Source: Pavona decussata
Taxonomy: Eukaryota
Reading direction: 5' to 3'
DNA length: 64,000 bases
Assembly (NCBI GenBank): GCA_977016875.1
Contig: CDRNST010000004.1
Coordinates: forward strand, 1,116,001-1,180,000
The position numbers were made by a program, and so were the translations under genes. The notes under the pieces are model-generated. The model searched no databases, had not been told where the DNA came from, and saw only the letters and a program-made list of their open reading frames with translations. Of the stretch, positions 10,183 to 51,839 are shown one piece after another (within the stretch, counting starts at the first letter, position 1; every line of letters starts with the position of its first letter).

Positions 10183-13100
10183 AACCCCGTTATCCATTTA
10201 TTATTAACGGCGGTCGGGCAAGAAAAACAAAATAAGAGAGGTTTTTACCGTGAGAACTGAAAGCTGATAATTTTTTGTGAGTCTGTGAGTTTACTAAATC
10301 ATTTTTCAATATACTAAAAAAAGTTTCAGGAACCCGTACGTGAATCGGTTGTTCGGATGTCACACATTCAGACAGAAAACGCCTTTTTTTTAATTTTTTT
10401 TTTTTATTTTCAATTTTTTTTTTATTTGAAATACGTTATAATAATTTATGCATTAGGTTCGGCTCATGAAAAGTTCGGCGTCTGAATCAAAGCCGTTCCA
10501 AAGCCGAAATTCCCGCCTGAGCCAGGCGGGAAGAACGGCTGAGCCGTTCCAAATTGAAACAACCGTTCTCAAATGATTCAGACGCCGAACTTTTCATGTA
10601 CATAATTCAAGGTATTAGGTTCGGCTCATGACAAGTTCGGCGTCTGAACCAGGCCTAAGCATTCAATCAATTGAGTATATACCATTATGCAAAAGTGCAC
10701 GAAAATTTTGCCTCAGTAAACATAGGGTATTTACACAATATTGGATAAACGTAGTCTTCAGTNNNNNNNNNNNNNNNNNNNNNNNNNNNNNNNNNNNNNN
10801 NNNNNNNNNNNNNNNNNNNNNNNNNNNNNNNNNNNNNNNNNNNNNNNNNNNNNNNNNNNNNNNNNNNNNNNNNNNNNNNNNNNNNNNNNNNNNNNNNNNN
10901 NNNNNNNNNNNNNNNATTGCCGACCAGTCTCCACGTTCTTCGCTTAAAAAGTTGAAACTTCTTTAAAATCGTAAAATGATTTAGTAAACCGACAAACTAG
11001 TAGTAAGGAGGGTCGATATCCAAGATGGCGCAGGAATGGAATGTGAAAATACGGCCTTCTGATTGGTCCATTTTTGTCCTTTGATCGATATCCAGCTCTC
11101 TGATTGGTTAGGGACCATATCGACCCCCTTACTACTCAGACTCACCAAAATCTTATCACCTTCGAGCTTTCAAAGAAACAGCCTTATCGTGAACGGTCTT
11201 TTTCTTATTCTTTCTTTTGATCACGGTCAAAGTGTGTCAGTTTATCTCAGTTACGAGAGTAGGATCTACATCAACCGAAGTGAATTAACTGTTGACTGAC
11301 TTTCAATATAAAATATTTTACCATCCAAATTCATGTCCTACCTGTGAGCAAACTTCAGACCAGACACTGGCTCTAGTTCACCAAGTAACAGCTTTAGTAA
11401 TGTTGTTTTACCCTGTCCGTTTTCACCAACCTACAAGGAAATCAGTACAACTTATTTACTAACCTATAAATCTGTACACACACTGAAACGTGTCCACAAA
11501 ACAACTGATCACAAAACTTACAGTCAAAAGATCTCAACTGATCTGTATAGGTTTGTTACATGTACCAATCAAAAAACGTCAACCTACCAAAGCAATTCTT
11601 GACTCCTGATTTGCGGAAAGACTGACTTTATTGAGAACAACTTTTCCTTTTTCATAGTAGAAGGTTACCTGCACAAGTACATGAAGAAAGGATATTGACA
11701 TAACTCAGAGCCGGGGGGAGACAAAGAACGGCTGCGAGGGAGACTAATTCATCAATGGCTGTGATCGACAGTATCTCAGCCTCCAAGGCTTAAGACTTGA
11801 GTTACCCTCGATAACAGTTAAATGTAGCTAATGAGAAAATAACAGTAATTTGGAAAATCATTAACTTCTCTAGGCAAACAATGTGTTATGCAGCTCTTGA
11901 AAGTGTTTAGACAACTTTTCTGGTATAAAAAGATTTCTTGTTAATATCCCATTCTGGAAACTGTTCTAAACTGATTCTGTATTAAAATTTGGAAGGTGAG
12001 TTTGTTTTCTGCCAAAAAATTCAATACAAGGTGTCTCGTAAAAGTTTTTGAGAATACCTTTAAATATTTAGTGAGTTACGATATCTTCAAAACATAACTA
12101 CCAAAAGATTCATGGGAAAACAGAGCAACCAAAAACTACTGACCTCATCCAGTTGCAAAACAGGGGGAGACAGTTTTTCACATTCAGGAAACCTACAATA
12201 AAGAAAGTAAAGACAACGTGTTATTTATCAAACACGACTTAGCCCCACAATACGATTTACGCCTGAGCTATCACAAAAGTGCGTAGAAATTCTGTATCAA
12301 GCCAAGTGTACCAAAGTACTACACAAGCCAGTGCTCAGGGTAGAGAATAATAACGCTTAAAACGTTTCTGAAAACGAGGGAACCTCTTCTATTTCTCAGA
12401 CAAGGATTGCATAAAAACGGAAACTGGATTTACTATGTGTCAGTAGTTTAGGGTGATACTGTGTAGGAAAAGATCTTAAGCACAACAACTACGGCCTCAT
12501 GCAAGTTAACAATCACAAGAATTCTGATCAGCAAAGATTAGACAATATATTTGACTTACTTGAGAACTACTGGCGGATCCACCACAACTGGCTGAAGATC
12601 CGGACTAAAATGACAGACAACAAATATGAGAATGAAGCAACCTCGCTTACCTAAGGGTGGGGTGGAGGTGGGGTGAAGTGCTGTTCAGTGGGGTGGGATA
12701 GGGGGACTAAATCATGCATTTGACCCATTTCGGATGTAAATAACAAAATAATGCATGGTTACTTTAAGAAAGAAGTGAAGAAATGAGCACTGAAAACAGA
12801 GATTATTGCCTTTGACTAGAAGAACACTGGTATTTACATTCAACAACAAATTCAAGTACACACGTTCAACACTCACTCAGGTTAATTTGAGAAAGAAAAG
12901 AAACCACTGCATGGGAAACAATATTGGAAGGGAATTTTAGAAAGTGTAAAACCTAATGTGCAGTTCTTTGAAACGAGTTTGATTTGCTATAAAGGGTGTT
13001 TAAATTTATTAAAGGAAACACAGTCTAGGTGAGGCAACCTTAAACTAACAACACAGGCCGGGGGAATTTCTGGTCACATTAGTTAAGAAGCCAAATACTA

Positions 13101-30760: not shown

Positions 30761-31071
30761 TTAAACACTACTTTCTAAAACACCTTGTGATGCCAAACAG
30801 TACTTTGTGCAGAGATGTTCCGTTTCAAGATCCTCATGCATCAAAGCCATGCCTAATGCAGCATACGTGGCTTGTGATCCTTGAGACCCGGTCCATCGAG
30901 CCAACGTGGCGAAACACTTGTCATCCAGTTTCGTTTGATCATGATCAATGTGCACCATCTCCGTCTCATCCAACAAAATGCAGCATAATGCCTTCCATTG
31001 TAAACCCAAGTCATGTGCTAGCAACAACAGATCATCACGAGACACCTGGCCAGGCTTATATGACAGAGGGT
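30761..31071 (-). CDS. Roco gene exon 13: C-terminal Death domain
   Basis: [73 protein letters not shown] matches the death-domain pattern (LA..LG..WK.L...L, I..D, L..W, AT...L..AL). Confidence 0.85.
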
Positions 31072-34000
31072 CTGCATGAAAAATATTTTACGGTTATTAG
31101 TAACTCCTACGCGGTCAAAAACGCGTACGTTAAGTCAGACTAGGACATTGTATACATTTACGTGATAATTAACCTCGTAGTCTTTAACGAATTCTTGTTT
31201 GATCGATATGTAAAGAAAGACTCTAAACCAATCGGTAAAGCCTGCGAATAATTCCACTGTCCCAGATCATTTTAACTTTGAATATCAGTAAATGTGACAA
31301 AACGTAGAGGAAATGTACCCGTAAATTTCTCGGAACACTCGAACAGTTTTCGGCCCCTTAAAGCATTTTTGAATTCCTTTTTTCTATCGATTGGTTGTAG
31401 GCTTTCGTACAAACCACCCCAAAGGAATGCTTAAGCTTGTAAAAGGTTTCAACGTTCTACGCTTCAAAATTAAATTGAAGCTCGAATTTCTGGTATTAAA
31501 CGCTGTGTACGTAAATTTGTGGGCCCGTACCTTGAGAAAGGCAAACCAGAGGCAGAAGTTGAATTTTGGCGACTTCATTTTCGAATTGTTGTTTAGGGTA
31601 TTTGTATGTAAAGGTGTCCCATACCAATCACTGTGAGGTAACTTACACGAATTATATACAACCGCTTGTACTCCTGGCCCCAGTTATTCAAAGAGCGGAT
31701 GACGTTATCCAGCGGATAAGTTGCTCTCCAGCAGATAAAATGTTTTTGTTGGAGGTTGGAGTACATTTTGTCCACTGGATAGCGACTTATCCATTGGATA
31801 AAGTTATCTGCTCTTTGAACAACTGGGGCATGGTGAGATGGGTAACCTTTGCCAAGTAACAATGTTGAGGTGGAAATGTTGCAAAGCGTAACGGCAAGGT
31901 CACACTTTTATATATTTTTTATAGATTTTGAACGAACGAAGGAACGAAGTAACCCACGAACCAACGAATGACGTGATTCCACTTGAAGTCCCTTTAAAAA
32001 TAAAAATAAAAAAGGAAAAAAGAAAGAAATATTTACCTGGGTAGTCATTGCGACGGAAATACTACGAGAGAAACAGAAACAAGGTTAATCTAGTGAATTG
32101 TTTATGCCATATGATGAGATAATGGTTCAGTCACTTAACTTCCTTACTAGGGCAATGCTCCGTGGGAATTAAGCGGTTTCCTCCTACTACTTAAATTTAC
32201 GCTGGAGAGTTAATTGTATTACCACAACAGTTCAAGCACCCTTTTCCAACAGACATAAACGATTTCCGAAGTCATTTGTCCTGGACATTCGTGTGTTGTG
32301 TTTTAAGTAAAAAGAGGCAAACAGGTTTGTATCATGCACATAGCGTTCAGTGGTACAGTTCCACGAGACAATTGGTAAATTATTTATGTATATGCTAAAT
32401 AGTGAGGGGCCTATAATACTCCTGTGAAGGACGCCAGAGACAACTGAATCAGACACGTACACATCCTAGTGTCTGTCAGTGAGGTGGCTATTAAAACACT
32501 TCAGCTGCCTCCGATTAACGGAGCGACTTTTCAGCCTCGTTGCCAAAAATGAGGCAGTACATCAGCGATTCTATTGCGAAAGGAACTTGGATGAGTTCCG
32601 AAAGTTCTGTCGAACTTTCTTCCTCATTTCTTGGTGTAGAACATTAACGAAGGAAACTTCACGCGGTCATAAAAAGTGCCAGAAATAACAAGATTTCACA
32701 CAGATAAGAAACAAGCACAACACCCAAGATAAACTTAGATGAGTTTATCTCGAAGGATAAACAAAACACATTGAATGGTCTTCTGATACCTTAAGCCAGG
32801 GTTTCAGCTTGTCTTCGTCTAACCGGGTATTAAGCTTTAAGGTGTGATCACACCTCAGAGGGTCTGCCGAGTCCAGTGAAATGAAGTGAGCACAGTCAGG
32901 ATGAAGGCAACAGGAAGCATGGTGCCACGAGCAGCCATCGGGTCCGTCCGATTCACCCACACACAGATCACAGCGTGCGCTCAGCCGCCATGTCATGGAG
33001 CGCAGCCACGGACATTGCTGACGAAGACAATCTAGAATGTCTTCAACACATCTGAGACGGAGAGAAAAGTAATCATGGACTAAACAAAAAGAATCCATTT
33101 TTATTTCTTATTTTACTCATCACCAGTGCGCTGAACTGAATTTCGCTCTGGTAGTATCTTACATAACTGTACATACAGAGAAATAAAATAAGAAAAATAC
33201 ATTCTCTTGATAGTGTACTGAACACTACTCTCATCCGCACACAGTCAAATTAATCGAGGCTTGCGAAACATGTAGTGTCCCTTTACATTTGAAACTCGTG
33301 GGAGCTAGGTCATTAACCTAGGGTCAAATAACAAACATCCTTGGTATGTGAGAATGATGTATTATTCAGTAAGTGACACAAGCATACTGGGAAAAAAATT
33401 CGAGTGCTCCTATCAGGAGTCCAACTTAAGACCTTCCGATTATTAGTTCGGATGCTCTACCACTGAGCTATAGGAGACTCGTGGGAGCTAAGGCCATTAA
33501 ACTTGGTATATGTCTAGCTCAGTAGTAGGTCATCGTTCGACTCCTGTTGGGAGAACTCGAATTTTCTTTCTCCGAGTATGCCTGTGTCCCTGACTGAAAA
33601 ATAAATCTATCACTTTTGTCTTTGTTTGTAAACCAACCAACCTGTAAACTTGTTGGCACACAGTAGCAGTCTCTCTCGCTTCATCTTTGCCATCATGAAC
33701 CAAATGAACCATGATCACGCTTTTGAAGCATGCAAACATCAAACTGAAGTCGCTCTGCCTCCCGATAAAAAATCGCGCTGCGTTGGCAAAAAGTTTAGGA
33801 GATCTTGCAGAATACTCCCGAGATGCCCATTGACCAAATAACACCACAAATCTGGCGAAAAAACCATAAGGAATATAGCCAGTGTTGAAGGTGAGGTAGA
33901 CTGGTGCAATCGAACCTTGGACACTTAATCCAGATATTTCATCGTCTGGCTTAGCTGTCAGTATAGATGGTACAAGGTAGAGTGGCTCACCATTTGGGGT

Positions 34001-37000
34001 ATCCCACCGACAAACCAGGTTGGATTTCTCCATAATGGAAAGAAGGGCTTCTTTTGAAACTTTAAGGCTGAGAGTTTGACAAACATAGCTGACAAGATCC
34101 TCCGACAAGATGCCCTTTTTGGCAAGGTTTTGGCGATGCTCCCGGATTACCATTGGTTCTTTCTTCCCGGACACAACTGTTATGATTTGACAAAATACAT
34201 AAATTAACCACTGTGGATCCAGTATGACCAGAGTTTTAGATTCATCAGCCTCATTGAAACAAAGTAACGCGCCACAATCACTCAGAAAGTGCAAAAGCTC
34301 ATCACAGTCTTCGTCTACTTCAAAACAACAAATTCTATCAGCAATTGCCTTGAACTCGGCTTTGGTGACATGTTTGACTCCATTACTGGCTAGACGATGA
34401 AGTACCTTCTCAACATAAAGCCACTGCAGAGGGATTTCCCGCTGTATGTGAGGTAGCGTAGAGGCCACAGCAATGACCGTTTGCCTCAATCTTTGGATAT
34501 TTGGATCCTCTTGTTGGAAAGGCTGCCCAGAACGAGTGTTGTCAACAGCAAACTTCTCATCGACGATGTGAGATGCAAATGCCTTTCTATGAAAACTGTC
34601 CAGGATGGCATTCATAGATGTCCAAGGATCTTCAACAACTTTGTCTGCATGCGTTCCAACTAAGATGACTGGTGGATGGGAAATACCGGAAGCATTCATA
34701 CTGCTGGAACCCTGAAAGGAATGAACCAAGTCCATCCACCTCATAAGGTGATCAAGACTGGATTCACCCCTGCACACCATGTTGGCCCCCTTTCCACAAT
34801 CCCCAGGCAGACTAGTGTCGCCCCTCTTGAATAGGTCTTTGCTCAGATCACATACAAGAAGATACACAGCTTCCTGTGACATGAAGATTGGATGCATGGC
34901 ATGAAAAAGAGATTGACCAGAAAAGTCCCAGATCACCGGCCAAACCTCTTCACCAACAGCAGAGTGTTCTTGTTGGAGGATACCCTCCACCAAGCTGATA
35001 ACTGTCTGTGGCAGATCATCTGAAGACTCAGGATCACTATCGAAGACGTCATCTCGGAAGAATGGCGAAGGAGGCTTCACACCATCATCTCTCTCTTTTA
35101 TTCCTGAAAGCAAAGAGGGAGTCGTATGGGAGTCAAAGAGGGAGTCAGAGGGAGTCAAATGACAATGAAATAGAACTTCTCGTAACACTTTTCATACTTT
35201 GATGCTTACACATTTTCTGCCAATTAAATTGCTTTCTAAAATTTAAAATCACTTTGTTAATGGGGGTTAAAATCAATAAGAGTGAATACATTGGGCATCA
35301 TCAAAGTTACGTACCAACTTCAACTTCCAACAAGAAAGCCATTAAAAAATTCAGGTTTGAAGGGGATTCAAACACATGACCCGTGTGATCAAGTCAGCTG
35401 GGAACTAGTCATTTCTGCGAGTGTAAATTGTACCTGTGGATTATGCATTCCCAGTTCACATTATGTGATATTTCATATCTTCACTTTCACCTATGGATGG
35501 TATCCATCCTCCATGGGTATAATACAAACTCCACAAAATGAGTAGCCCCCAACTGGCTTGATAAGCAATGGTATCTCAGAGACCACGGGTTTGAACTTCG
35601 CTAAAGTCCATATTTTTCAGGCTTTCTTTTTGCAATTTATTTTAAATTGATTGCCCAAATCTAATATACATTCACCATTAATCTGTTGTGGAGACAAGTC
35701 CATATGGTTTCCTACTCCATTGGAGAAAACATTTGCTCCAGAGGGAAGCTCCTGAAAAACAAATGAATCTTCAGCGCACGTCTCACTGTTCCACAGAGGA
35801 CTCTTTCTTGCTGCGTACTTCTTTGGCAAATCAGGAGTACTGGATTGTGTGGGAGAACCTGAAGAGTCATCAGATGCTCCTGACAGCTGCCGCGCCACAA
35901 GCTGAGCACTTTTGTGATCAAAAACAGTGGTGGTGTCATCGACTTGATGCGCTTTCCATGCCTTGATTCCAGCCTTTAACAGAGGTGTATCCATCTCCAC
36001 TCCCTGTGTGCTGGTTTCATGTTTGTTAAACATGTCTCCTTTGAGGGATCTTTTGAGGCTTGTTTTGCCCGCACCGTCCTGACCAATCAGCATAACTCGA
36101 ACACGGATGTCACATGTTTTACCATGTTCTAATGCTCTTTTGTATGCTGCTTTGGCTTTGCTGCCTCTTGCTAACACAGCTGGTGGAATAAGACCTGGGT
36201 AAGAGAGACACAAATGTATACAAACTTAAAATTACATTTCATGCATGAATGTTTCAAATTAAATATACCACTACCACAGAAGACACTGCACTTCGTTTTG
36301 GTTGGTCTGTTCACAACATTTTGAAAGGCCCTTTTAAACATCTAAAAGACCGTTTTCCCTACCCTTTTATAGTTCAGCTCGTGAAGTCCCTAACCTTTCA
36401 TATATGCACCTGACCAGCCTGAAAAAGGCACCCCTTTTTGGCACAGCCTCCCTGTTTAGAAAACCCCCTTTCCCCCTACCCTGGTTGTCACCAGTGTATT
36501 CAGTTGAGCTTACCTCTCTGTTCTTTATCAAACTTGACAGGCCGAGTGAGATTTGTCTTCAAAGAACCACGGTTGCTTTTGTAATACTACAAAGCAAACA
36601 GTTCAATCAGAGATTACTGCATGTAGAGTAGACATACTTATTATATTATTGAAAGAGAGGTGCAGGAGCATTTCCACTATTGATTTAGGTGCTTGCAAGT
36701 CTTAATATTATTGCTACATGTAACAGTTGCCAGCTTTCTTAATAATTGAAAGAGCAAGTCAGGGATGCAGGCTGGGATAAGTTCAAGTAAGCAGACCACC
36801 CCGAGCTTGTGTGATCAGCTCCCCCTTGACTATCAAGGAAGGGGCTGCTAGCATTCTGTTACATGCCAATTCGTATTTGTACCTTTTAGCATTGAACCAA
36901 TAAACAAAAATGAACTATTAGCATGGTGAAATCTTAGTGTAAATTTAAGTAAACACTAGCTGAACTCTTTTATAAAATGGACGATAAAGGTTTTTAGAAA

Positions 37001-40000
37001 GAATTAAACAAATTGACAGACATACCACCTAAGAGACTAAAAAAATAATTTCAAATCAGTTTAACTTTTATTTTCTTTTGTTTGTCTTATTACCATAAAT
37101 TATTTGAAACAACAGGAATAAAAGTCTGCCTGGTTTGAAACATTTTAAGCCAACAACAAAAATAAAACACAATAGGTAGTTTCACTTTTCTTACTAAACC
37201 CTTTAAAAGATCCAGTTACTATGCATATTATAACATACATTGGTGTAGTGTATACGACCATGTTTAAACCAGGCCTAGATGGATCTTCAATACACGGACC
37301 AAACACCCAACACTTAATGCAAAAAGGGCCAGGATTATCCCCTGTTAAGTATTCTGTTGTATTTCTGATCTCATGTATCTCAAGTATTCTGTTGTATTTC
37401 TGATCTCATGTATTTTTAATAACTGTATCCTTAATCACCCAACTCAACCAGTAAGTACTGCACTGACAGTTACAAGCAATATGCCATAACCTTTTTGACT
37501 ACACATCTTTGTTTGAGTGGTACATGTATGTATCCACATATAAGCCATGTCAAACCAGGTTTTTAAGCCAGAATTTGAAAACAGGGCATGCAATAGTTGT
37601 GTCTCTGGTAAAGGACTAGGTAATGGGAGTTCACAAGACAACTGGACAACAGGATGCCCTTCTGACGTAAAAAACCTAGCATCAAACAAACAAACAAACA
37701 CCCCAAAAAGCACAACAAACATAATTCCATCTACGTTATTCCTTGTTAAAATGATATACTGTATTGCTAACAAAAAGAGGTTTAGATAAAGTGTGTGCAA
37801 GGGAAGAATTTGATCCAAGTTAATTTTACCAAAGACCAGGCGGTGTGCGTCACGACCCACAAAGGGTGCTGGGTAAAAACATGGAAATGGCTCATTTGTC
37901 TCTGGTCACGATCGAGTAAATATCTCCCGAACGTAAGACTTATGTCGACTTACAGTTGCACTGAAACTGGGCATTCAAACTTTGCTTCCTTTTCCAAAAA
38001 CTATCACTAAAAAGAGCAATTTGGCAAATTTTAACGGTCTAGTGGCAGCCATAGATGTTTCTTGTTGGATACACAAGGCGATTTCGTTGAGTTATTCCCG
38101 GTTTGGAGACAATCAAAGGCGAAGATTATTAACCTCTTACTAACCAAGCGCGAGGGCCGTACTGGGGAATCTTGGCCCGAGGTCGTGGCAGTACGGAACG
38201 AGCGCAGCGAGGTCCGTACAAAAACGACCGAGGGCCAAGATTCCCCAGTACGGCTTGAGCAAGCTAGGTTAGTAAGTAGTTTATTATATGGCACTCGGAG
38301 CAAACTTGTTTATTTATAAAAAACGCACTTCCGGTCACTTGAATTCAAAGGGTTTCCGTCGTGACGTGTTTTTGATGACGCAAGCAACCCAGAAAGCAGG
38401 AGTTTGAAAACAAATTTACTGAACATTTACATGTAATCAGGTTGATTATAGAAAAGACTTCAAGAACGATTTGTAGCCAAATTTGACGAAAATCTTAACA
38501 GCTGAGGTTTGTTTTTGAAACTCACAAAAGGGTTTCGTCGATCCCAGAAAATTTACTAGGGCATCACAAAGTACGGATCAAGAAAAGGGTGCTGTGAAAA
38601 TCACATTGAACTTTAAAAGAAGTGGCATTAAGTCAATCGTCCTCATCGCTCTCATCTCTGGCTCGGAAACTCGGAAACATTCCATGTTGGAATCAGTCTT
38701 TTGGGTAGTTTCTTTGCAAAGAATGAAAGTATTTTTAGATTTTCTTTTTGCAGTTTAAGCTGTAAATTTTCAAATTTGCCGCTTGTCGTTAACAAAAATA
38801 CACGGCTTATGACCATTTCCATGGAAACGGTCCGTATGGTAAAATCCCGACCAAGAAAGAGCCAATCAGAATGCGTGTATTTACCTCAAGACTACCTTAC
38901 CATATAATAATTATGTTTATTCTTGTACTAGTATTATGTGCCGTCACGTCTGCTTGTGGACACTTTTTTTTTATGTATACATATTTAGACAGCGAGCAGT
39001 CGAGCAGTCCCTTTCTCCTAAGTTCTGTAGCGCATGATGGATCGAGCGAGCTAGCTAGCGGTGAGGCAGCGAGTTAATTTTTGTAATTTGGATAATTTTA
39101 TTAAGTGTCCCTTCGCGCGCAGGATCTGAGGAAAAAGTATGACTGCTCACAGTCTATTTTACATTTCTTTCGATCATTTTCAGTTTGCTTTTTTTATCTC
39201 AGGGTGAAAGAGATCTACATTTCCTTCTTGGATTTCTGGGAGAGAAATAGCATTTGCAAGCCCGTTGGCTTTTCCGGTCAGTTTCCCGGGAGTTGAGCTA
39301 CTTGGTTTACACGATCTCTTCATAGATTCTTTATTAGTTCAACGGCTTTCAACGGAAAAACCATAAGGGGTAGACCTGGGTAGACCCCGAAAATTCCAAA
39401 GTAGAAAGGATAAGCTAGCTTAAAGTGCAAAAGTATTGGCCAAACCCAGCAAGAGTAAGTAGCTTTAGCCTCAAGAAATTCAGTAAATCAACGACCAAAA
39501 CAACATGGCGGCGGGCGCGAGGTCGTCACCTTTGAAATGGCTACAAACGCAAGCAAATGCTTCAGCTTAAAAAGTAACCTAACCAGCATTAAGCCAATTT
39601 GTTCCTCTAACTTTGAAACGAATTTTAACCGGGCAAAATGTCACAGACTTCGTAAATGACGACATTTTCGACGGCTAACCTCTCCAGACTGAAGCTCTTG
39701 GGCACGAAGACTACTGATCAAATAACGCATTCTGATTGGTCGAATTTCGTGACGTACACCGCCTGACCAAAGACCATAAATAAGAATCTAAGCCATTTTA
39801 CTGATAACGAAATGGCAAAAAAAAAAAAATTTAAAAAAAAAAAAAATCAATAAATAAATCAATAATAATAATCATATACATTTCTACTAATTTACTTGAA
39901 ATAAGTGCCACTGGCTTACCTCTACTAACAAAGACAAGGTGTCAAATTGCTGAACATCGTCAATCGTAAAATGATAATTTTTCTTGGTCACCACTCTATA

Positions 40001-43000
40001 ACGGATTGACTTGCCTTTCCACCTATCAAATGAAAACAGCAGTCAAACAGCTTTCTAATACAAGCTTTTACTTTGAGAGGCTGCATAACTACTTGCTCTT
40101 CCCAGTTTTTTTGCTTCATTGCATAAATCTAGTAATTAAAGCTACAGTGGGTTACACGTGACAACTTCTTCCAGTAAGGAAAATTACATTCTAATTGACA
40201 TAGGTGATTAAGAACAAAAAAAGTATACCCAAAATTTCCCTTAAAAAATACCACAAAATACCAAATTTAAGAGATAATTACTTTACACCCAAAAAGATCC
40301 ATGTTTATGTAGTATCATTCCGTAATTCCATGGCTTCAAGGGGTATTTGGGGATGAATACCTCAAGTAATACTTCAAAACAGTCAAAAATATATCCCTTG
40401 TAATATTTGGACGATTTGGAAATATTGTGAGAGGTATTTATCCCAGATATCCTGTAGTATAGATCTGTTTATACTACAAGGCTGAGATCTGTGGATCACA
40501 GCACTGTCTGTATATTTATTCACATGCAAACGATTAACTTTCTTAGTAGAACATGTAAATTTCATACAAAAAGAATTGGGAATTTGGCCGACAAAAAATT
40601 CAAAGAAACTACATGTAAAATTTTTCTCATGTTTTTCTGAGTTACAGAAAGTTCATCAAAGTTTGCTTTATCTTTTTAAATGTAGCCAAATTTCTATGCT
40701 TCAGCAGAATGACCTAAAGATTATTCTGGCTTAACTAACTTGTCAGCTATGGAAGTGCTTAACTTTTTGCCACCAGTTTTGTTTCTTTCAGCACCATGCT
40801 AGGCAAGGGCAAGGTTATAGAGATGCTTTCCAGTAAAAGATTAAATATCACTTGTAGTCTTTTCAACCCTGAAGGCGATGTCATGGCCACCATCAAGGAA
40901 TTCCTGTCTGGTCTGTTTATAATTATAATTTTACATTTTATTAAACCTGCATGGAGATTACTGGGTACACAAAGAAACAAGAATTAATTAACTCACCACA
41001 AGTGGAGACAATAATCTCCTGGGTACGTGATGCACTCTCTGATAACAAACATTCCATCTCCTACACTGACATCTTTGACTACAGATTCCACCTCACTTGC
41101 AGACATTTTACCAATGTACCACCTAAGTAAATAAACAAGATAATTATTGGTTATACAAACATTTAACTCTAGAAGCCACGAGGATATACAATAATGGAGA
41201 CAATTTGCTTCTTCCAGGTAGTTTACATCCATGTCAATTAATAACCATTTGCAGCCCCAGCCACCTGACAAAGTGAACAAAAACTTTTATCTGCAACTTA
41301 ACAACCACATCAAGCTGAGTGGAAGGGTACCTGGGAAGTCTAGGGGCCTCCACTGTGTCGGACCCTAGACAGTAACATGCTCCCATGACTGGCAATTCCG
41401 GCAACCCAGCCGTGAGCCCCCATGCACAGTCATCCTGACACCCAACACACTGCACTTAAGCAGTGGAAGAGGGGAAAAAAGGGGGGAGGGGGAGGGGCAG
41501 AAAAACCAAGACAAACCACACAGAAACTCCACAGAAATCGCCATGCTTGAACATACTGCCACAATGCAGTGCTCTGTGCGTGCATGGTGCTAACCACAGT
41601 GCTGCTGATCGTACGATGAATGCCAGCTTTTCTTTGTTAGCTTAGTTTTAATTGCATTTAACTGCATATAATCATGTGAAAACAAGATTTATATTTTTAC
41701 ATTAAGTAAGAAATCCATTGTTGAACATTTACAGTCATGCAACATGTCACATTTCTGACACATAATGTCATATTTAAAGAATTAAAGAAGAATGAGAATA
41801 TCTGGTTATGAGACAAGTGTCCTGTCTGTTCCAATGCCTGCTATATAATTATATGACCAACATTTTTCAAGACAAACAACACCTGCAGGAATAATTGGGT
41901 TCAGAACAGGACACAAACCCAACCCCCCCCCCACCCCCAATTGTGTTAACATATAATTACAATCACTGTCTAATGCACCTACTCTTCATTCCAAGGGTGA
42001 ACCTGGACATAGATTTTTGAGTTGTCTACGATGTGATGGTCACCAAGAAGAAATTCATTCATAACCAGAGGTTTGCCTTCCAGGCGTAACAACTGACAGT
42101 CTGTAGGTACTCCACTCAATTCTGCAATCTGTTCTTTAAGAGATTGCACTTGATTAAAAAGATTTGTCAGCAGAGAGTATGTCTCTGAACCAACTACCAC
42201 ACGAAGCTGGATTTGTGAGGATGCCGTAGTTTGAAGGCGATGCCTTGGCAGAGTACTGTTTGTACATGAACCTATTGTGTAGAGAAAAAAGAGGGATTCA
42301 CCTATATTTATGGCCTGGCCCCAGTAATATGTTCAAAGAATGGACAACTTTATTTAATGGATAAGACGCTATCTAGCAGGTAAAATGTATTGGTTGAAGT
42401 ATGTTTTATTCACTGTCAGATAGCGATTTATCTTCTAAATAGAGTTATCCGCTCTGGTTTCTATAGACACAAAACTTATACAGCCATGTCAAATTGTTTG
42501 GTAGTACTAGATACAGTGTAGGATAAAAGGAGTAGCAGGCAGCAAGGGCCTGGAAATAGCCACTTTAAATGGTCCATTTTTGACAGCTTTCAGATAACAC
42601 TCTTTAAGAAATTTTTATTTCAAATAATACCATATTTATTTGATTAACTGCCCACCTTTGAATAAGCACCCACCTCGAATAAGCACCCATCCCACCCCCT
42701 CCAAACAAAAAACGTTTTTGTACAGTACTAACCCACTTGCAGTAAGAGGAGCATCGGTTGTGTTCCAACTTGGTTTTAGATACAGTAGTCAATGAACATA
42801 TATCTTGTTTATGGCTTGTTTATGTTAGTTTCTGTTCTTTGTTTTGTCTTGTTGAAGAGAAGTAAACTTGTTTTCCCTTGTTTTGTTATTCTCTAAAAGT
42901 GTCCTTACTTGCTGAAAATGCATGTTGGGGAAATAATAAGCGCCCACCCTCAAATAAGAACCCACCTCAAATAAGTGCCTACCCTCATGGGCCCAAAATT

Positions 43001-46000
43001 AAACAAGCGCCCAGGGTGGTTAATCGAATAAATACGGTATGTCATTTTCCACCAGTGCATGTAGCTTACGTGGGAAAAGCAAAGGCTATTTATTAAACAA
43101 GTATTTGAAAACAAGGTCAGGTGCAAAACTATAAAAATTGAATGTTCCAGACAAATTTGTGCACCTCCGTTTATTGAGTTGAAGGTATAGAGTTGAGACC
43201 GTTTTTCCTGCTTACAATCATTTGAACTAGTATTTCGTATTAATAAGTTTAAAGAAAAGGCAACAAATATTTCATTGTACTTGGCAAAATTGCTGATCAT
43301 TTTGACAGGACTGCTTATGGTAGTGAAAGGAACAGAAAAGAACATAATTGATGCAAAACTACTTAAACTACACTACATACCTTCCCCTGAATACAATGAG
43401 GACCCATCTGTGCAGTCATGGGACTCTAATCTGCTCACTGGTTCAGTTAGTTTGATTGGCAGTCCTTTATTGTTCTGGTAAAACTGTTAAAGACACAAGG
43501 AAAACTCATGAAAGCAATCTGGTTACAAAAAACTAATAAAAGTGGTTGAAATCCTATTATTTTATATAAGTTGCTTTATTTTTATATTATAGTTTATACA
43601 AATTATTTCAAATTACTGTTGATACTGATTGAAATAAACAGTGTTTCAGAGCACTTTTTTAAGAAAATTGTCTGCTGCAGGAATAAGGGTTAGTTTCAAA
43701 ATTTTGTTAATTTGTATAGTGTATTTTAATAGACGTTTCTGTAGTCTAAGAGCCTGAAATTCTCTCAATTATGAGGAGAAAAAAGTAATGGCTGGATTTC
43801 TCCTGTTTACTCTCTTTCTAACTTGCATTCTACTTGATTAACTTGTGATTGAACCTGGTTCATTTGTGTTTTGCTAAATTGCAAAAAAAAAAAAACAAAT
43901 TGACGCAAGTTTTTTAGCCTATTATTTTATATAAGTTGCTTTATTTTTATATTATAGTTTATACAAATTATTTCAAATTACTGTTGATACTGATTGAAAT
44001 AAACAGTGTTTCAGAGCACTTTTTTAAGAAAATTGTCTGCTGCAGGAATAAGGGTTAGTTTCAAAATTTTGTTAATTTGTATAGTGTATTTTAATAGACG
44101 TTTCTGTAGTCTAAGAGCCTGAAATTCTCTCAATTATGAGGAGAAAAAAGTAATGGCTGGATTTCTCCTGTTTACTCTCTTTCTAACTTGCATTCTACTT
44201 GATTAACTTGTGATTGAACCTGGTTCATTTGTGTTTTGCTAAATTGCAAAAAAAAAAAAAAACAAATTGACGCAAGTTTTTTAGCTGCCGTCTTCTTATT
44301 AACGATAAATTCTGTCATAACATTGTCAAAGTTGTTGTGAATCCATGAGCCACAGTCTTTTATGCAGTGCATTTCCAGCAACTTTGACAATCTTATGACA
44401 AAATTCATCATCAGTAAGAGGACAAATGCATCAACCCGGACAATCCCGGGGGGGGGGGGGGGGGGGGCTGGTACTTGGGTTCAGTTTTGCTCTGTATGTG
44501 CCGCTGGCCTCTCATAACTCCCGCTCCATTATAGTCTATTTTGTGGCCAGTTACAGACCCCATCTTAGTCACTTTTGGGAAAATGTAATTTTTGCGATCC
44601 CAACTAAGTCAACTTTCTATTTATGCATCTACTTTATCAATCCTTTTCATAGGTCATCCTAAAATGAATTGACACATTTTAAATTGAATGAAGAACACTT
44701 TACTTTTCACATACAGTACAAGCATTCCTAATCTTCCTAGAATTTTCTTACCCCAAAAACCCAAAAATGCGCTACCCCATTCTAGTAACTCTATTGAAAA
44801 TGCAACTCCATTCTAGTCAATCCAGTCATGAAAATGCGACCCCATCCAACGGCACATTCCCATTAGCCACTTATGAAGTAAGTACCCCCCCCCCCCCCCC
44901 GCCGGGGAGACAATCCAAGGACACACAAGACAATAAATCATGTCTCAAATGCAATGCTGTTAAACCTCTTAACTGCCCTATTTCTTGTTGTACATTATTT
45001 GTATGTGATTCACATTCATTCACTTACTTTTAGTCTTTTTGACCTCCCAAAACTGCAGTAATTGGCAATTACGCTATTGTGGTGCCCCTGCCTTAGTAAT
45101 AGTTGTTTTCCCCCTGTTATCTTGTCGTGTTGTTGTTTTTGTGTGTGTGTGTCTGTGTGTGTCTATAATAATTACTGTTACACATAGGTGAAGCTAATAA
45201 AAAAATAAAAATAAATAAAAACTGGTGACTGATGTCAATTTGTTAAATAGAATATTGCCACGAGTTGTTACAGCTGAATTTACAAATTTTCCATCAAATA
45301 ATTATGTTCTAATTATACCTTACAATGTTTATTCTGAGAGTGCAGAATTGCAGGATTATAACAAACAAATATGAAATAAATGTGATGTTATGTTTATAGC
45401 CTGGTGAATAAATGATTGACATATTTTTTTCCGTCAGTGACATACAAGTAGGCATACTCAGAAAAAGAAAATCTGAATTCTCCCAGCAGGAGTTCAACAG
45501 ATGACCTTCCAATATTTTCTTACTTAATTAAGTTTGGATGCCCTACCATGAAACTAAGTTCATGTGACAAACAACCTTCAAACTGCTAGTATTTGAATGT
45601 TGAAGGGTGGTATATGTGAAAGAAAAGGGTATATGCGAAAGAAATGTGGTGTTATGTTTCAAGTCTGGTGAATAGTATAGAAGTTTAATGACTTAGCTCC
45701 CACGAGTCTCCTTTAGCTCAGCAGTAGAGCATCCGAACTAGTAATCAGAAGGTCATAGGCTTGACTCTTGTTGGGAGAACTGGGATTTTCTTTTCTGAGT
45801 ACTGTATGCCTGTGAAACTGAATACATCTAGCAAATAAAAATATATTGGAGCAACAGAATGCCTTTTTGCAAACATGATGATTATACAGTACTTTTAGTA
45901 AAATTGTTCTGCACAATACACCTGATAATGCTGAATTATATTTATTTTACCTTCTATAACAGCAACTTACAAAAACGTTCCATTTTGCACCACCAATTCA

Positions 46001-49000
46001 TCATGAATTCTTATGTTCTGCTATGAAAATTTGACTTCAAAGCTTATTTTTTTTCTGTTTAGTTAAAGAGGAGGGGTGGGGGGGGGGGGGGTAAATAGAG
46101 CTTTTAGGTATTTACAAGTACAGCAACTTCTATAAGATGTGTATTTAAAAACAAATAAAGTCTGTATTACCGTGACCATCTCATCAATGCTGTTAAAAAA
46201 GTGTTGCTCATTAATGGTGAACATCATGTTCTTTTTACAAATCACTCTGTAATGCCTGATTTTGCCATCAATGCTGTAAAAAAAAGAGAAAAAACCACAG
46301 TTATCCTGTCCCAACAACAACTAAAAATTGAGCAATGAATAAAAATAATCAGGATATGCTAATATTAAAGTAAATTCTGTATTAAATGGTCACCCTTAAT
46401 TCAAGGGAACTCCAAACTTGATGACTTGCTACAGGACCACAGTGGTTAACAAGAAATCAACAAAAAAAATTAATATAACTTGTTGGAAGTGACTTAATCA
46501 CAAAACAAAACACTTCACAAAACAACAATATTTAATGACCAAATTCCATGGTTTTGTGGAAACTTGAGCAAAAAAGGGGATTTTTCATGCACTTTTGTAA
46601 CTTGAATGCAACCCCTCCCTTGATTAGTTGGCCACATTGTTCCAGTTGAACAAGTTGAAATATAATCATGAAGTAGCTCTGAGTTACATGATTTCCTAGT
46701 TTTAATGCAAAAATAGAGCCTTTTCTAGTGAGGGAGGGGAGGGGGCAGAAACAGTACTAATCTCAGGTTAGGGACTTAAACTATTAAATTAGCTCAACTC
46801 ATTGGGGGGGGGGGAGGTGGGGTGGTTAAAAAATCTGAGAGGCATACAGTGAGGAAAAATTGGCCACTTAGTAAGCCTTAATGGATTTCTTGTTATCATT
46901 AAATTAACCAAGCCAGTAACATACCAAACAAACAGGACATAGTCACCAGGAAAATTTACACTTTCTTTGACAAGAAACTTCCCATTGCTAGCGGAAGACA
47001 TGACTTTCTCTGCCTGGTCACGGGTAATTTTACCATGGAACCAACTTCAAAAAGAAACAAATAAAAAAACAATAATTATTAAAAAAGACAGTACTAACAA
47101 TTACTCAAAATTGTTCTCTGTAAAATTTGAGTCAAAGGACAAGTGCCAAATCAGGCTTTAAATATTATAATACTAAAATTATTTTTTATTACAAAAGGTT
47201 GACTAGTCTTATATGACCATGTCACATCTAACATAACATCAGAAGCATATACGCTTAAAAAAAAAACCCTACGTTTAAGTACTATTACAGTACCAATGGA
47301 AACCAGAGGATGAACTAGCAAACAAGTGTGCCCTTCCACCATAGGCAGAACAAAATTAATGTAAAATCAGTCGTCAAATGTATTGATTCCATCAATACAT
47401 TGCCAATGTTATCGGTGAGTTCCATCCCCCCATTGTCTGTCGCATTGCACAAGATTGGAAGCATTGGAAAAAGCCTGCGGCTGTCTGCATTGCAATCTGC
47501 TTCAGGAGTGAGTGTCAATGGAAATTAAAGAAATGCTCTGCTTAGATATTATAAAAAATGCCCAACCAATTGGTGCGACGTTTGGTTGGATCAGTAGAGG
47601 TACATGTAAAATTACAAATAGGCTGCAAGAAGTCCCACGAGGCTGTGGTACTTAATGTTACAACATTCACCTTGTCCGACTGATTGATTGAGTCAGAATT
47701 GTATGTTCTACCTACACGTGTTTGAGTGCACAACATAATGAACATATAACACTTGGCCATGGTCACCAGTAAGCTTTTGGTATACTGGTGCTATGTGTAT
47801 GCTCTGGAACATGTGAAAAAGGTGGCTAAGTAACCAAATCACTTGGTGAATTTGGCAGTGAGCCAGTCTTTATATCTGATGCAGGGTTATGCTACATTTG
47901 TATTCTCAAAACTAGTCTATGTAATGTCAATCACAGGATTACTGTAGCTGCCAAATCAACCAGCGCTCACTGTGTAAAGTTTTATTTACTGGAGTTATTA
48001 ACACCAAAGATTGTGTGGTCAGGAAAATAATTGAGCTCGTCCCAGCATGGCAAGCAAGTATCTTATGGTGTCACTCCAGTGAATAAAACTTTATATAGTA
48101 AGCGCTGGTTGATTTAATGGCTTCATTGGTCCTTATCGGTGATTCTCCATACAGGTAAGTCCAAAAACGCAACAATACAATGCCAGTTACAGTTGGCAAG
48201 TACACACCCTAAAATATGAAATTTACAACAACGCTAACTGAATTTATACGAAATAGGAGTTAAATACCATCATGCATGTGAAAGTGAAAGAAAATAATGA
48301 AAAAAAAATGTGCATCGCATGGTAACAGTTACTATAGCATATTTATTATTGCCATGTTGCCCTAGTGATTTGCTATTCGGAGTGATACAGCTGGGTGGAG
48401 ACAGAAAATGTGAAGTAAACTACGTGTATATTAAGGTTACCGTGTACCTTCACGGGTGACTTCAGTTAAATGGATATAGCGCCTCTCAGTTACATCACAG
48501 ATACCCAAAACCCTATATCAAATTAAAGCTTATAGAACTGGGTATTCAAATATTTCATTGCTTTTTCAAGAAAATAAATTCCCAGGTTTCCCGTAAAGTC
48601 GGAACTTGAAGGTCCAGGTCATTGTTCGAGAGTTCCAACTCAATGCGATTTTTATATTTTGTTTGTTTTCTCCAGGTTTTCTCCAGGTCAGGATCCCAAA
48701 AGCTTAAAAAACGTGTCGGGGTTTTCCATAATTCAATTTCGCTCAAAAGTTACAAATCATTTTCAAAACTGCGAGAAAACCATGCGGAGAGAACGCACGG
48801 AAATGGCTTCCAAGGAAAGAATTTTTACAATTATCGAATTCCCCAACACACTTTTGTTGGTTATATATTTTTCTAGCATCTGGCCCAATTTTACTGAAAT
48901 CGGCCAAATCGTTGTTGAGTTGTAACTCTTGAAAGTGTCTCCTGCAAGCGAAAATTAAAATTTGAGAAAACAGCGCTTGGAAAAAAATTCTCGCCACACA

Positions 49001-51839
49001 AACAAGTACCGCCCCCTAACGTCTTTATGGAAAATTAGCCAATCATTTTGCAAGCTACATTTTCTTCAGGTCACTTCCTGTGAAAATTTACTCACAGTTT
49101 TGCCGTACTCTCCTTCCAGAGTAATCAACTCTTTCACCATTTTGTTGGATATCTGTGGTGTTTGTTGTACGTGCACGTCAATTTTGTAATCTGCAATGAT
49201 TATGGGAAAAACAAAATGGGGACTGAAGCCGACCTCATCATGCAAAGCTGTTGGGCCGAAGCAGAAGCGGCTGAGGAGGGTAAAATTATAAGCGTTACGG
49301 AATTATCGGGGAACCACCGTATTAAACCGCATGTATTTTCTCAGTCAAATCAAAAATTCTTGCTACTCTTCATTTAGCCTGTGAACAGGCTCCCAAGTGG
49401 GGTATAGCTAGGGCGAAAAGAAAAATCGGCCAGCCGGGGAAGCGGAGAGCTTTTTGTCATCGCCCTATGCCCCACTTGGGAGCCTGTTCACAGGCTACTC
49501 TTCAGTCGAAAAGCCAGTGAATAAATCTATTCGCGCGAAATATTGTTGAAAATAGCGAAGTTTCGAAATTGCTCATCGAAAGTTCGGGTGAAAATTCGCT
49601 CTTGAAAACTCCCTTCTCTGGAAGATTTTAACACCTTTACCTACTTTAAAGTGTAGCATAAAGCTTTTGTCTTCTTTTATGTCAGTGTCGTACTCGAACA
49701 AACGCAACTTCTTCCACTAAATACAGGACATTCGAAGTGCAAGAACATGAGGGATTCAAGACTATAGACAGACCGTTCGCGCAAATATCACAACGGGTGG
49801 TTACACCAGCAGCAATATGCTGTTAATCAAAGTAAAATTTAACTTCCGGTGGAAATCGCTTACGTCCCAATTTCTCGGCAAATACTCACTCTTTTTCGAA
49901 AATTCTTTTTTTGTTTGTAAGAACTTACTGGGAAGTTTATTTTTATCTAAAAAAATGAAAATCCAAAAATTTTCTCTCTGAAGGTACACGGTAACTTTTA
50001 CTTTAAGAAAACAGCAAAGCAGCAGGGATCAAATCAATTAGCACTCCCACAGATCAAACATCTTATGCAGTGAACCATTACTCCACTGCACCTTTACATG
50101 TTTATCTCAATCTCAAAACATAGTTTTCTTTGGCTGTGCTGGCTGGCAAACTATATAAGTTTGTTTTTCCCGTTGTGATCTTTTTCTTTTTTTTTCTTTG
50201 AAGAGGTGGGTAAGCAGGTCTACCGATCGGTGTATTTCACAAATATTTTTGCCCAGGTTTTGGATAATTTCAGAGTAAAATTGTAATTGGCTTTGGAGAT
50301 CCTGCAAATGCAGCGGATTGTGGATTTATCGATTTTTTTCAGTCCCGGATTTTGGTTTTTGCCGATTATAAAATTCGGATCATGGATCTCTCCATTTTTT
50401 TCTCTATGTTTTCATGGCCGAAACATTGGATTGATTGTTGATTACATTCTTGTTCTTAATCCCTGAGAAACTTTGCTAAAACATAACCAGTACAAGGTAA
50501 CTGTTAAAAAATAATTTGTGGATTCGGATTTGAGTAAATTTTTTTACAGATCGATGGATTTGGGTGTTAAATTATAATAGACTGGCGGATTTGCGTACCC
50601 CTATTCAAACCCCTCTTTGAAGGTAAGCAAAATATGGATTTAGTTAAACTCTTTCCATCAGTACTAAGACCTGACAGGCTCTCTAAATGTTAGTCACTTC
50701 ATTGAGAGACAAGCTTTGTCTGTACAACAATTAAGAAAAATTTTTCCCCATCCCCCAACTGACCCATGTTTTTTATTTCAAAATGTTATGGTTTGTTTCT
50801 AAGGTAACCTTTATATACGTTTTAAGTGTTAACTAAAATAACTCTGACATCCCTATACCATATAACCCTCATAACCACAACTTCAAACACCTTTTAGAGT
50901 CTTGGGAAAGATAAACAAGAAATACTCCAGATTATTTGTTGTCTACATGTATTAATCTTTTTTTCTAAATATTACAATAAAAAATTGCCATTCCACAAAT
51001 GGGTTGATCATCTGTAGCAAACAGGGGTGTTTTCAGTTCACATTAATCTGGTAGCATTAGTGAATTCTCCAAAATGTTAATTAAAAAAATAAGAACCAAT
51101 GTATGGGGTATAAACTCAGGGAAATGAATTCAAAATTGGCACATATCTTTTCACAAAACCCTTTTCCACCAAAATTTATTTAATTACCGGCCCTCTTTCC
51201 TCTCTCATAGTAATACTTTAAAACGTAAGCCTATATTTGTTGATTGTTAATTAGCATTTTGGAGGTCACGTCCCAAGCATGCACATGTACATGTACATTG
51301 TAACTTATAATTTGAATTAAATTTTAAACTCACTTGAGATGCCATGGATGAATCTGCACGTACAAGACTGAGCCATGGTTCACACAGAACTCCTCCAAAG
51401 TATTGTACAATATTGTCAGCCCTTTATTGACAAAACACGACAAGTCAACCACACGAAGAAATAAACTCTCGGCAGGCAGACCCAAAATGGTAGACAATTG
51501 CTTCCTCAAATCAAAAATCCTTGCGGAATTTCCCCCTTCCGGGATAATGCTAAGAACTTGCCCAGTTTCCGTTACCACCTTGATGTAAAATAAAGTCGAG
51601 TTATTCTCTTTGCACGATAAATTGACGATAGTTTTCGGCTTTAACAAGTCCCCCAAACAAATGTGACTGCCATTTTTAACTTCCACCTTCGATCCATTTT
51701 GAGAAATATGGAGAATTTGAGCGGAAACTGGCAGCGAAGTCGCCTGGGAAATCTTCTCTTTTAGGCTTTCCACGGTATCCAAAGGAGTCACTTCAACCGC
51801 AATCCTCTTTGCATTTAACAAATCCACGAAAACTTGCAT
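30761..51839 (-). CDS. Roco-family protein Ubl-Ubl-SH2-Ubl-SH2-Roc-COR-Cys/His-rich-Death, 13 exons, 4002-nt CDS (about 1333 aa)
   Basis: Exons 51839-51334, 47044-46925, 46273-46171, 43483-43381, 42271-41983, 41122-40997, 40022-39920, 36586-36514, 36194-35676, 35103-33642, 33051-32790, 32061-32037, 31071-30761. All introns are GT-AG with matching phases (2,2,0,1,2,2,0,1,1,2,0,1), and the frame is open from ATG to TAA. Confidence 0.85.
32230..32690 (-). mobile_element. Degenerate non-LTR retrotransposon (CR1/L2-like) reverse-transcriptase fragment in intron 11 of the Roco gene
   Basis: [22 protein letters not shown]...RYVHDTNL is a decayed [22 protein letters not shown]...YADDT motif. Confidence 0.75.
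33370..33600. mobile_element. tRNA-derived SINE-like repeat present as a divergent inverted pair; relatives at about 45430-45820, 53910-54035 and 15830-16330
   Basis: tagctcagtggtagagcatccgaact...aaggtc.taggttcgactcct (A-box/B-box-like) on both strands; too degenerate to be a functional tRNA. Confidence 0.65.
33642..36194 (-). CDS. Roco gene exons 9-10: Roc GTPase and COR domain
   Basis: G1 [10 protein letters not shown]2 STQGVE, G3 WDFSGQ, G4 GTHADK, G5-like VDN. COR motifs [44 protein letters not shown]. Confidence 0.92.
36514..42271 (-). CDS. Roco gene exons 5-8: Ubl-3 and SH2-2
   Basis: Ubl: [14 protein letters not shown]...[28 protein letters not shown]...[21 protein letters not shown]2: WYIGKMS...[30 protein letters not shown]...[19 protein letters not shown]...LTRPV. 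Confidence 0.85.
43381..51839 (-). CDS. Roco gene exons 1-4: tandem Ubl-1/Ubl-2 and SH2-1
   Basis: Ubiquitin-like start [43 protein letters not shown]; second Ubl ending [11 protein letters not shown]2: [13 protein letters not shown]...[30 protein letters not shown]...[19 protein letters not shown]...LTEPV. Confidence 0.85.
43553..44285. repeat. Near-perfect 365-bp tandem duplication in Roco intron 3
   Basis: 43553-43917 is repeated from 43918; the only visible difference is poly-A length. Confidence 0.9.
48435..49996. mobile_element. About 1.56-kb non-autonomous TIR element at a TTAA-like site (Kolobok/piggyBac-like)
   Basis: TTAA|GGTTACCGTGTACCTTCA ... TGAAGGTACACGGTAACT|TTTA; no transposase ORF. 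Confidence 0.65.
49375..49497. mobile_element. TAG...CTA-ended MITE with 9-bp TSD (AcademH-like), nested in the previous element
   Basis: CTCTTCATT|TAGCCTGTGAACAGGCTCCCAAGTGGGG ... CCCCACTTGGGAGCCTGTTCACAGGCTA|CTCTTCAGT. Confidence 0.75.
50203..50615. mobile_element. MITE with GAGG...CCTC termini and 6-bp TSD TTTGAA
   Basis: TTTGAA|GAGGTGGG ... AAACCCCTC|TTTGAA. Confidence 0.65.

Follow-up and report, generated by a model that had tools for sequence, protein, structure and literature searches.

A conserved lysine at betaB5 in one of two CSK-like SH2 domains encoded upstream of a Roc-COR-Death region in Pavona decussata

Exchanging the betaB5 arginine for lysine is the textbook laboratory way to disable an SH2 domain, and of the more than 120 human SH2 domains just three are without this arginine, none of them having lysine in its place. 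The human SH2 domains without the FLVR arginine are those of TYK2 and RIN2 (both His) and SH2D5 (Trp) (PMC7530234). What, then, does a natural lysine at this position mean? A gene of Pavona decussata raises the question. It lies on the minus strand of a 64,000-nucleotide stretch (hereafter, the window; positions 1,116,001 to 1,180,000 of contig CDRNST010000004.1, assembly GCA_977016875.1), which is part of a 602-Mb eukaryotic genome, and Pfam matches on its successive exons give the domain order Ubl-Ubl-SH2-Ubl-SH2-Roc-COR-Death (Ubl, ubiquitin-like). An initial annotation of the window described the two SH2 domains, here SH2-1 and SH2-2, as a CSK-like pair with complementary loss of the phosphotyrosine-binding arginines. 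We find that the lysine of SH2-1 is present in every orthologue recovered and sits in the N-terminal exon under the strongest constraint, and, judging from sequence comparison, we lean somewhat toward the view that SH2-1 is a working but atypical SH2 domain, SH2-2 an ordinary phosphotyrosine reader, and the pair a device that docks or regulates the Roc-COR-Death part of the protein.

We assigned pocket residues through HMMER alignments to SHP2 and through an alignment with ~40 further SH2 exons from this genome. In SH2-1, betaB5 is Lys (codon AAA at 46968-46966, motif FLVKES) and alphaA2 is Arg (47022-47020, ..KITRDQAE..), and the second exon of the domain supplies betaD4 His and betaD6 Arg (..IRHYRV..). 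The corresponding residues of SH2-2 are Ala at alphaA2 (41100-41098, ..KMSASE..), Arg at betaB5 (41040-41038, FVIREC) and, from its second exon, Arg at both betaD4 and betaD6 (..SIRYRV..). All motifs and residue calls quoted in the initial annotation are thereby located on the minus strand. The complementary loss read from them does not survive, because a residue other than Arg at alphaA2 is ordinary and SH2-2 keeps its betaB5 Arg and a basic betaD6, with which it is probably not impaired in this species. Nine other SH2 exons of this genome have no Arg at alphaA2, and by our own reading of their sequences we take them to include both SHP SH2s (Gly), two SOCS-type exons and three STAT-like ones; both SH2s of human SHP2 likewise have Gly at alphaA2 in the alignment of the PDB match. 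Known SH2 domains form two classes, Src-like ones having a basic alphaA2 and SAP-like ones a basic betaD6, and the two residues are rarely used together (PMC7530234). SH2-1 has a basic residue at both places (alphaA2 Arg and betaD6 Arg) and SH2-2 at betaD6. At betaB5, a residue other than Arg is found among the ~40 SH2 exons only in SH2-1 and in L022 (G000:C215:540306-540440), an SH2 exon with His (..FLVHKGES..).

We give next to no probability to FLVKES being a sequencing error or a variant private to the individual that was assembled. The codon at 46966-46968 shows no alternative letter in four runs from four studies, namely three RNA-type runs (X1, X2 and X7) and a deep DNA-type run. Over the exon that holds the codon (SH2-1 exon A), the X2 contig is exact throughout, the X7 contig is exact over the 90 bases that it covers (46955-47044), and the X1 contig has a single difference, at 46992 (Ala to Thr). 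Orthologues were sought by searching exon 1 of the gene against 1.84 billion representative proteins, which returned exon-sized orthologous fragments, and by a word search with SH2-1 exon A in 5.8 billion proteins, which added further ones. The five non-identical orthologues are L005 and L006 (two different assemblies), L007-L011 (Logan contigs), P0153 and the distant L055 (ENA ERZ25073755); L052-54 contain exon 1 only. Exon 1 is 62-68% identical to that of the window in L005 and L006 and 34% identical in L055, where the start of Roc is 63% identical, and the order Ubl-Ubl, SH2, Ubl, SH2, Roc is repeated in L006 and L055. The motif F-L-[VI]-K-E-S occurs in SH2-1 of all five orthologues, encoded with AAA for the lysine in L005, L006 and L007 and with AAG in L055, so that Lys stands at betaB5 in six of six sequences including the window. 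To the question posed in the initial annotation, whether the change from Arg is fixed or orthologues read FLVRES, the answer is Lys in 5/5, and the run contigs and orthologues together lead us to reject an error or private allele.

If the lysine were neutral, SH2-1 would bind phosphotyrosine normally, with alphaA2 Arg, betaD6 Arg and a basic betaD3 making good the missing arginine. The domain does have basic residues at three places, namely alphaA2, betaD6 (Arg, with His in L055) and betaD3, which is Arg or Lys in all four sequences compared (window, L005, L006, L055), and the C-terminal SH2 of p120RasGAP, termed 'FLVR-unique', binds phosphotyrosine without using its FLVR Arg (PMC7530234). The lysine codon, however, is one transition from an Arg codon, and with dS of around 1 in exon A (0.4-1.3 between the species compared), Arg would be expected in some lineages, yet none of the six sequences has it; Arg-to-Lys also attenuates phosphopeptide binding in the SH2 domains tested, according to PMC10132808, which cites Mayer 1992. 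We therefore hold neutrality to be quite improbable.

The lysine-bearing exon is also the best kept of the N-terminal region. We estimated dN/dS by the Nei-Gojobori method, and the ratios are rough, the exons being short and dS near saturation; the ranking of exons by constraint was nevertheless consistent across the three pairs compared. Between the window and L006, SH2-1 exon A is 90% identical with dN/dS of 0.05, as against 63% and 0.14 for exon 1 (Ubl1-Ubl2), 66% and 0.16 for SH2-2 exon A, 74% and 0.19 for Ubl3, 61% and 0.28 for the Roc exon, and 71% and 0.50 for SH2-1 exon B, with dS of ~0.9-1.6 in most exons and 0.28 in SH2-1 exon B. The window and L005 give 0.09 for SH2-1 exon A and 0.25 for exon 1, which makes the ranges over the pairs compared 0.05-0.09 and 0.14-0.25. 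Identity of SH2-1 exon A to the window is 87-90% in the four closer orthologues and 65% in L055. No SH2-1 orthologue with the exon available has lost the alphaA2 Arg, the Ser of KES or the His at betaD4, the comparison at betaD4 covering only the window, L005, L006 and L055. A pseudo-SH2 in the sense of a decaying domain, as the initial annotation had suggested for one of the pair, does not fit SH2-1, because its pocket half is the best conserved piece of the N-terminal region.

Exon B of SH2-1 varies among the runs: the X7 contig differs from the window at 8/104 bases and the X2 contig at 3, compared with 0-1 in the adjoining exons, and several of the changes alter residues in ..NEQH.. (to ..NERQ..). 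The dN/dS of 0.50 given above for this exon is also the highest between species. This could reflect divergent alleles or a fast-evolving, presumed ligand-specificity region (EF loop).

Both SH2 domains belong to a single transcribed gene. Contigs of the three RNA-type runs, each from a different study, were aligned to 41090-47089, and spliced contigs of all three join the chain 47044-46925 / 46273-46171 / 43483-43381 / 42271-41983 / 41122-; every contig-supported intron has GT..AG ends, and the DNA-type run shows none of these splice joints. Each SH2 domain is split over three exons and each is preceded by a Ubl exon. In SH2-1, exon A (46925..47044), which runs from the alphaA helix to strand betaC, scores 45.0 bits against Pfam SH2 (PF00017, cut-off 21 bits) and is covered by X1, X2 and X7 contigs; exon B (46171..46273), from betaD to alphaB, has RNA contig joints and a match of 18.8 bits to model positions 43-74; and exon C (43381..43483, 103 nt) encodes the end of the domain ([16 protein letters not shown]) and a linker, with joints 46171>43483 and 43381>42271 in X1, X2 and X7. 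SH2-2 exon A (40997..41122) scores 31.8 bits and is entered by the joint 41983>41122 in the three RNA runs. Exon B of SH2-2 (39920..40022, ..SIRYRV..) was placed by splice sites and by its 42% identity to SH2-1 exon B, and orthologous exons are present in L006 and L055; exon C (36514..36586; [17 protein letters not shown]) we infer from similarity to SH2-1 exon C and from a fitting acceptor, donor and phase; it runs into the Roc exon and is 79% identical in L006. Searches were done exon by exon, joined exons being used in alignments and trees; the first exons of both SH2s pass the PF00017 cut-off and were also recovered by a whole-genome scan. The limits first given for the SH2 pair do coincide with exon ends, since SH2-1 exon A begins at 47044 and SH2-2 exon B finishes at 39920, but the initial annotation missed the third exon of each domain, 43483-43381 within that span and 36586-36514 outside it. 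A frameshift near 42250, considered on account of an SH2-C-terminus-like stretch in frame 0 (42255-42160) set against the Ubl3 frame, was dropped because the RNA contigs reveal the separate exon 43483-43381; they show no frameshift, and the resemblance is due to chance.

The remaining exons place the SH2 pair in a Roco protein. Exon 1 (51336..51839, minus strand like the other exons of the gene), encoding Ubl1 and Ubl2, runs from an ATG at 51839 to a phase-2 GTGAGT donor, matches Pfam ubiquitin (PF00240, E=3e-7) and is unique in the genome; an X1 contig extends 715 nt past 47044, a length sufficient to contain it. Ubl3, between the two SH2s (41983..42271), matches Pfam ubiquitin with E=4.6e-9 and has RNA contig joints. 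The Roc P-loop exon (35620..36194; ..[12 protein letters not shown]..) gives 27.3 bits to Pfam Roc (PF08477, cut-off 27 bits), its acceptor having been read from the sequence, and an open frame at 33533..35191 covers the rest of Roc (30.7 bits) and COR-A (E=4e-14). Roc is thus followed directly by COR, the arrangement that defines Roco proteins, and L006 has the same order. A further open frame (30764..31087) would encode the death domain, and the PDB matches listed for it are death domains (RIPK1 with E=0.004, then weak matches to THOC1, ankyrin-3 and PIDD). The SH3-SH2-tyrosine kinase architecture of CSK and MATK is absent, the exons flanking the SH2s encoding ubiquitin-like, Roc, COR-A and Death domains.

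How might such a protein work? In the reading that we favour, the pocket of SH2-1 would probably hold phosphotyrosine weakly through alphaA2 Arg, betaD4 His and the basic betaD6, or might instead serve another acidic or phosphorylated ligand or an intramolecular contact. SH2-2 would dock on a phosphotyrosine motif through betaB5 Arg and the basic betaD6, with no need of an alphaA2 Arg. Together they would act in docking or regulation, positioning or releasing the Roc-COR GTPase switch, and the death domain would be the output of that switch, recruiting partners. SH2-1 would in this respect be comparable to the p120RasGAP C-SH2 and to the SH2s of TYK2 and other JAK kinases, which function without a betaB5 Arg contact, those of the JAK kinases often binding Glu.

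Several observations weigh against this reading. In addition to the attenuation by Arg-to-Lys noted above, mutating the betaB5 Arg costs ~1,000-fold in affinity (PMC7530234), and SH2-1 may bind no phospho-ligand, its conservation then reflecting a structural or intramolecular function. The less constrained copy is SH2-2: at betaD4 the window has Arg, L006 has His and L055 has Ser, and the SH2-2 of L055 also has Lys at betaB5 and Gln at betaD6. At the other end of the protein, the Pfam Death match (18 bits) scores below its cut-off, and past the acceptor of the Roc P-loop exon the coordinates are those of open frames.

A purely structural SH2-1 stays a live rival because Arg-to-Lys attenuates binding and loss of the Arg is so costly. 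SH2-1 would then be a true pseudo-SH2 with an empty pocket, serving as a rigid spacer or packing within the molecule, for example on the neighbouring Ubl or on Roc-COR, and SH2-2 would be the sole reader. Strong purifying selection is compatible with such a role as well, and the SH2 of JAK kinases works within a larger binding module. Conservation is best, however, in the pocket itself, at alphaA2 Arg, at the Ser of KES, in the BC loop (..SVNFPGDY..) and at betaD4 His, and in L055 the pocket of SH2-2 is more degraded than that of SH2-1, which means that SH2-2 cannot be the sole reader across the family. We regard this alternative as unlikely.

The same changes in L055 (Lys at betaB5, Ser at betaD4, Gln at betaD6) imply that phosphotyrosine reading by SH2-2 is not family-wide. 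Orthologues of SH2-2 come from L006 and L055 only, and a word search with SH2-2 exon A returned nothing beyond the window's own protein. The betaB5 Arg typical of a canonical phosphotyrosine reader, which SH2-1 lacks, is present in SH2-2 of the window and of L006, where the motif is FLIRES and betaD6 is Lys, but is missing from L055, where the motif is FLVKES. An ancestral Lys with Arg regained in SH2-2 or a parallel change in L055 could explain this, each requiring two changes. Both SH2s of L055 (L055:11955-12074 and L055:17333-17443) read FLVKES, and they share a GSFLVKES stretch in which 21/24 bases are identical; this could be a short gene-conversion tract.

A bolder proposal makes SH2-1 the type of an 'FLVK' class of SH2 domains, natural and conserved, that would read an acidic or otherwise phosphorylated motif or the neighbouring Ubl, the Ubl-SH2 pair gating Roc-COR-Death. 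We rate it as a long shot; if true, it would be a previously undescribed link from tyrosine-kinase-type to death-domain signalling in these animals.

From which SH2 family do the two domains come? Among the SH2s sampled, that of CSK is supported as the closest relative of SH2-1 and SH2-2, in agreement with the resemblance of SH2-1 to CSK first noted from the sequence. With SH2-1 exon A as the query, CSK was the best single-domain match in the PDB (47.8 bits, against 29.3 bits for the SHP2 C-SH2 alone; the SHP2 entries listed above CSK sum two domains), and in the 5.8 billion proteins the next matches after the orthologues were vertebrate CSK fragments with 64-67% identity. Within the genome, the best paralogue of SH2-1 exon A was the CSK gene at C151:585.7 kb (46.5 bits; next 34.6), which we identified by its SH2 and downstream tyrosine-kinase exons, and the reverse search from this gene returned SH2-1 as its best paralogue (42.1 bits; next 36.3). 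Phylogenies, which the initial annotation had called for, placed CSK, SH2-1 and SH2-2 in one clade when full-length SH2 sequences were used, with support of 95/92 (51 rows) and 94/97 (27 complete rows). In the same trees SH2-1 and SH2-2 were sisters (90/98 and 97/99), and the comparisons show that the two arose when a cassette of one Ubl and one SH2 was duplicated long ago within the gene. Capture of an SH2 from a CSK-like gene is plausible and can reasonably be inferred. A second CSK-like SH2 exon of the genome (L043, G000:C105:754995-755219; ..FLVRVS..YSLCV) has stop codons inside its Pfam match and may represent a CSK SH2 copy that has become a pseudogene.

Intron positions, also suggested as evidence, gave a divided answer. 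All three positions and phases are common to SH2-1, SH2-2 and the CSK gene of this genome, but two of them, the one ahead of the first Trp and the phase-2 one following betaC, are found in 12 or more further SH2 genes, and we reject intron positions as proof of a CSK origin, two of the three being non-specific. The phase-0 intron after the alphaB helix (..LVE), shared with the CSK gene, may be informative, and it is here that vertebrate CSK fragments also end.

The widespread introns are one of several observations that would fit a likeness to CSK that is not descent, SH2-1 being a slowly evolving, near-consensus SH2 of another or unsampled family and the grouping a sampling artefact. In a tree of the N-terminal half, CSK, SH2-1 and SH2-2 fall in a polytomy. 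Identity in exon A within the genome is 58% to CSK and nearly as high, 55%, to Vav, and a Vav fragment, together with a long-branch SH2 (u45), falls within the CSK clade. The trees do not contain the C-terminal halves of SH2 domains encoded in split genes (among them SHP, PLC-gamma, Vav, Shc and Fes), which enter the larger tree by their first halves only; the second exon of the Vav SH2 was sought in L002 and not found. SH2-1 exon B alone ties BTK and CSK in the PDB search (E ~0.3 each) and so cannot separate them, and SH2-2 exon B had no SH2 match there. Against this stand the reciprocal best paralogy, the lead of CSK among single-domain PDB matches, the support for the clade and the ..LVE intron, and we think a non-CSK origin rather unlikely, while according it more weight than any of the functional alternatives above.

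Among known systems, the SH2s of CSK and MATK share with SH2-1 a short betaD-betaE region (..KLTIDE.. against ..MFTINE.. and ..HFTIDD..). In contrast to these kinases, the protein has neither an SH3 domain nor a kinase, its SH2s sit among Ubl domains upstream of Roc-COR-Death, SH2-1 has Lys in place of the betaB5 Arg, and SH2-2 has Ala at alphaA2. The human SH2s without the FLVR Arg and the p120RasGAP C-SH2 resemble SH2-1 in having conserved folds and a betaB5 Arg that is absent or makes no contact, and they still mediate interactions; SH2-1 differs from the human FLVR-less domains in that its replacement is Lys and all its other pocket residues are canonical. As in the tandem-SH2 proteins SHP2 and SYK/ZAP-70, two SH2s in one chain could read two sites, or dock and autoinhibit, and SHP2 resembles SH2-2 in having SH2s without an alphaA2 Arg. 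Here, however, a whole Ubl domain separates the SH2s, and the effector is a Roc-COR GTPase with a death domain rather than a phosphatase or kinase. Roco proteins of the DAPK1 type likewise run from Roc through COR-A to a C-terminal death domain, but this protein lacks their kinase and ankyrin repeats and has Ubl-Ubl-SH2-Ubl-SH2 at its N-terminus.

The fold, the family and SH2 domains lacking the FLVR Arg are already known. A limited literature search turned up no account of FLVKES or FLIKES as a natural motif or of a conserved natural betaB5 Lys, nor any of SH2 domains fused to Roc-COR-Death. With the lysine kept across deeply diverged species and the pocket strongly constrained, SH2-1 offers a natural test of an SH2 pocket without its arginine, and the position of the SH2s before a Roc-COR GTPase and death domain suggests that this animal group wires SH2 recognition into death-fold signalling.

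Some further features of the window deserve mention. Positions 10763-10915 consist of 153 N (an assembly gap or masked sequence). Between COR and the death domain, a Cys/His-rich open frame (32748-33107; ..[30 protein letters not shown]..) may encode a zinc-binding module. The intron between SH2-1 exons B and C contains an identical direct duplication (43571-43768 and 43936-44133, ~365 bases apart), and there are intron stretches (42290-43090, 44290-44890 and 45290-45890) where every run has a very high contig depth, which reaches ~188,000 in the DNA-type one; these stretches are high-copy repeats or transposon remnants.

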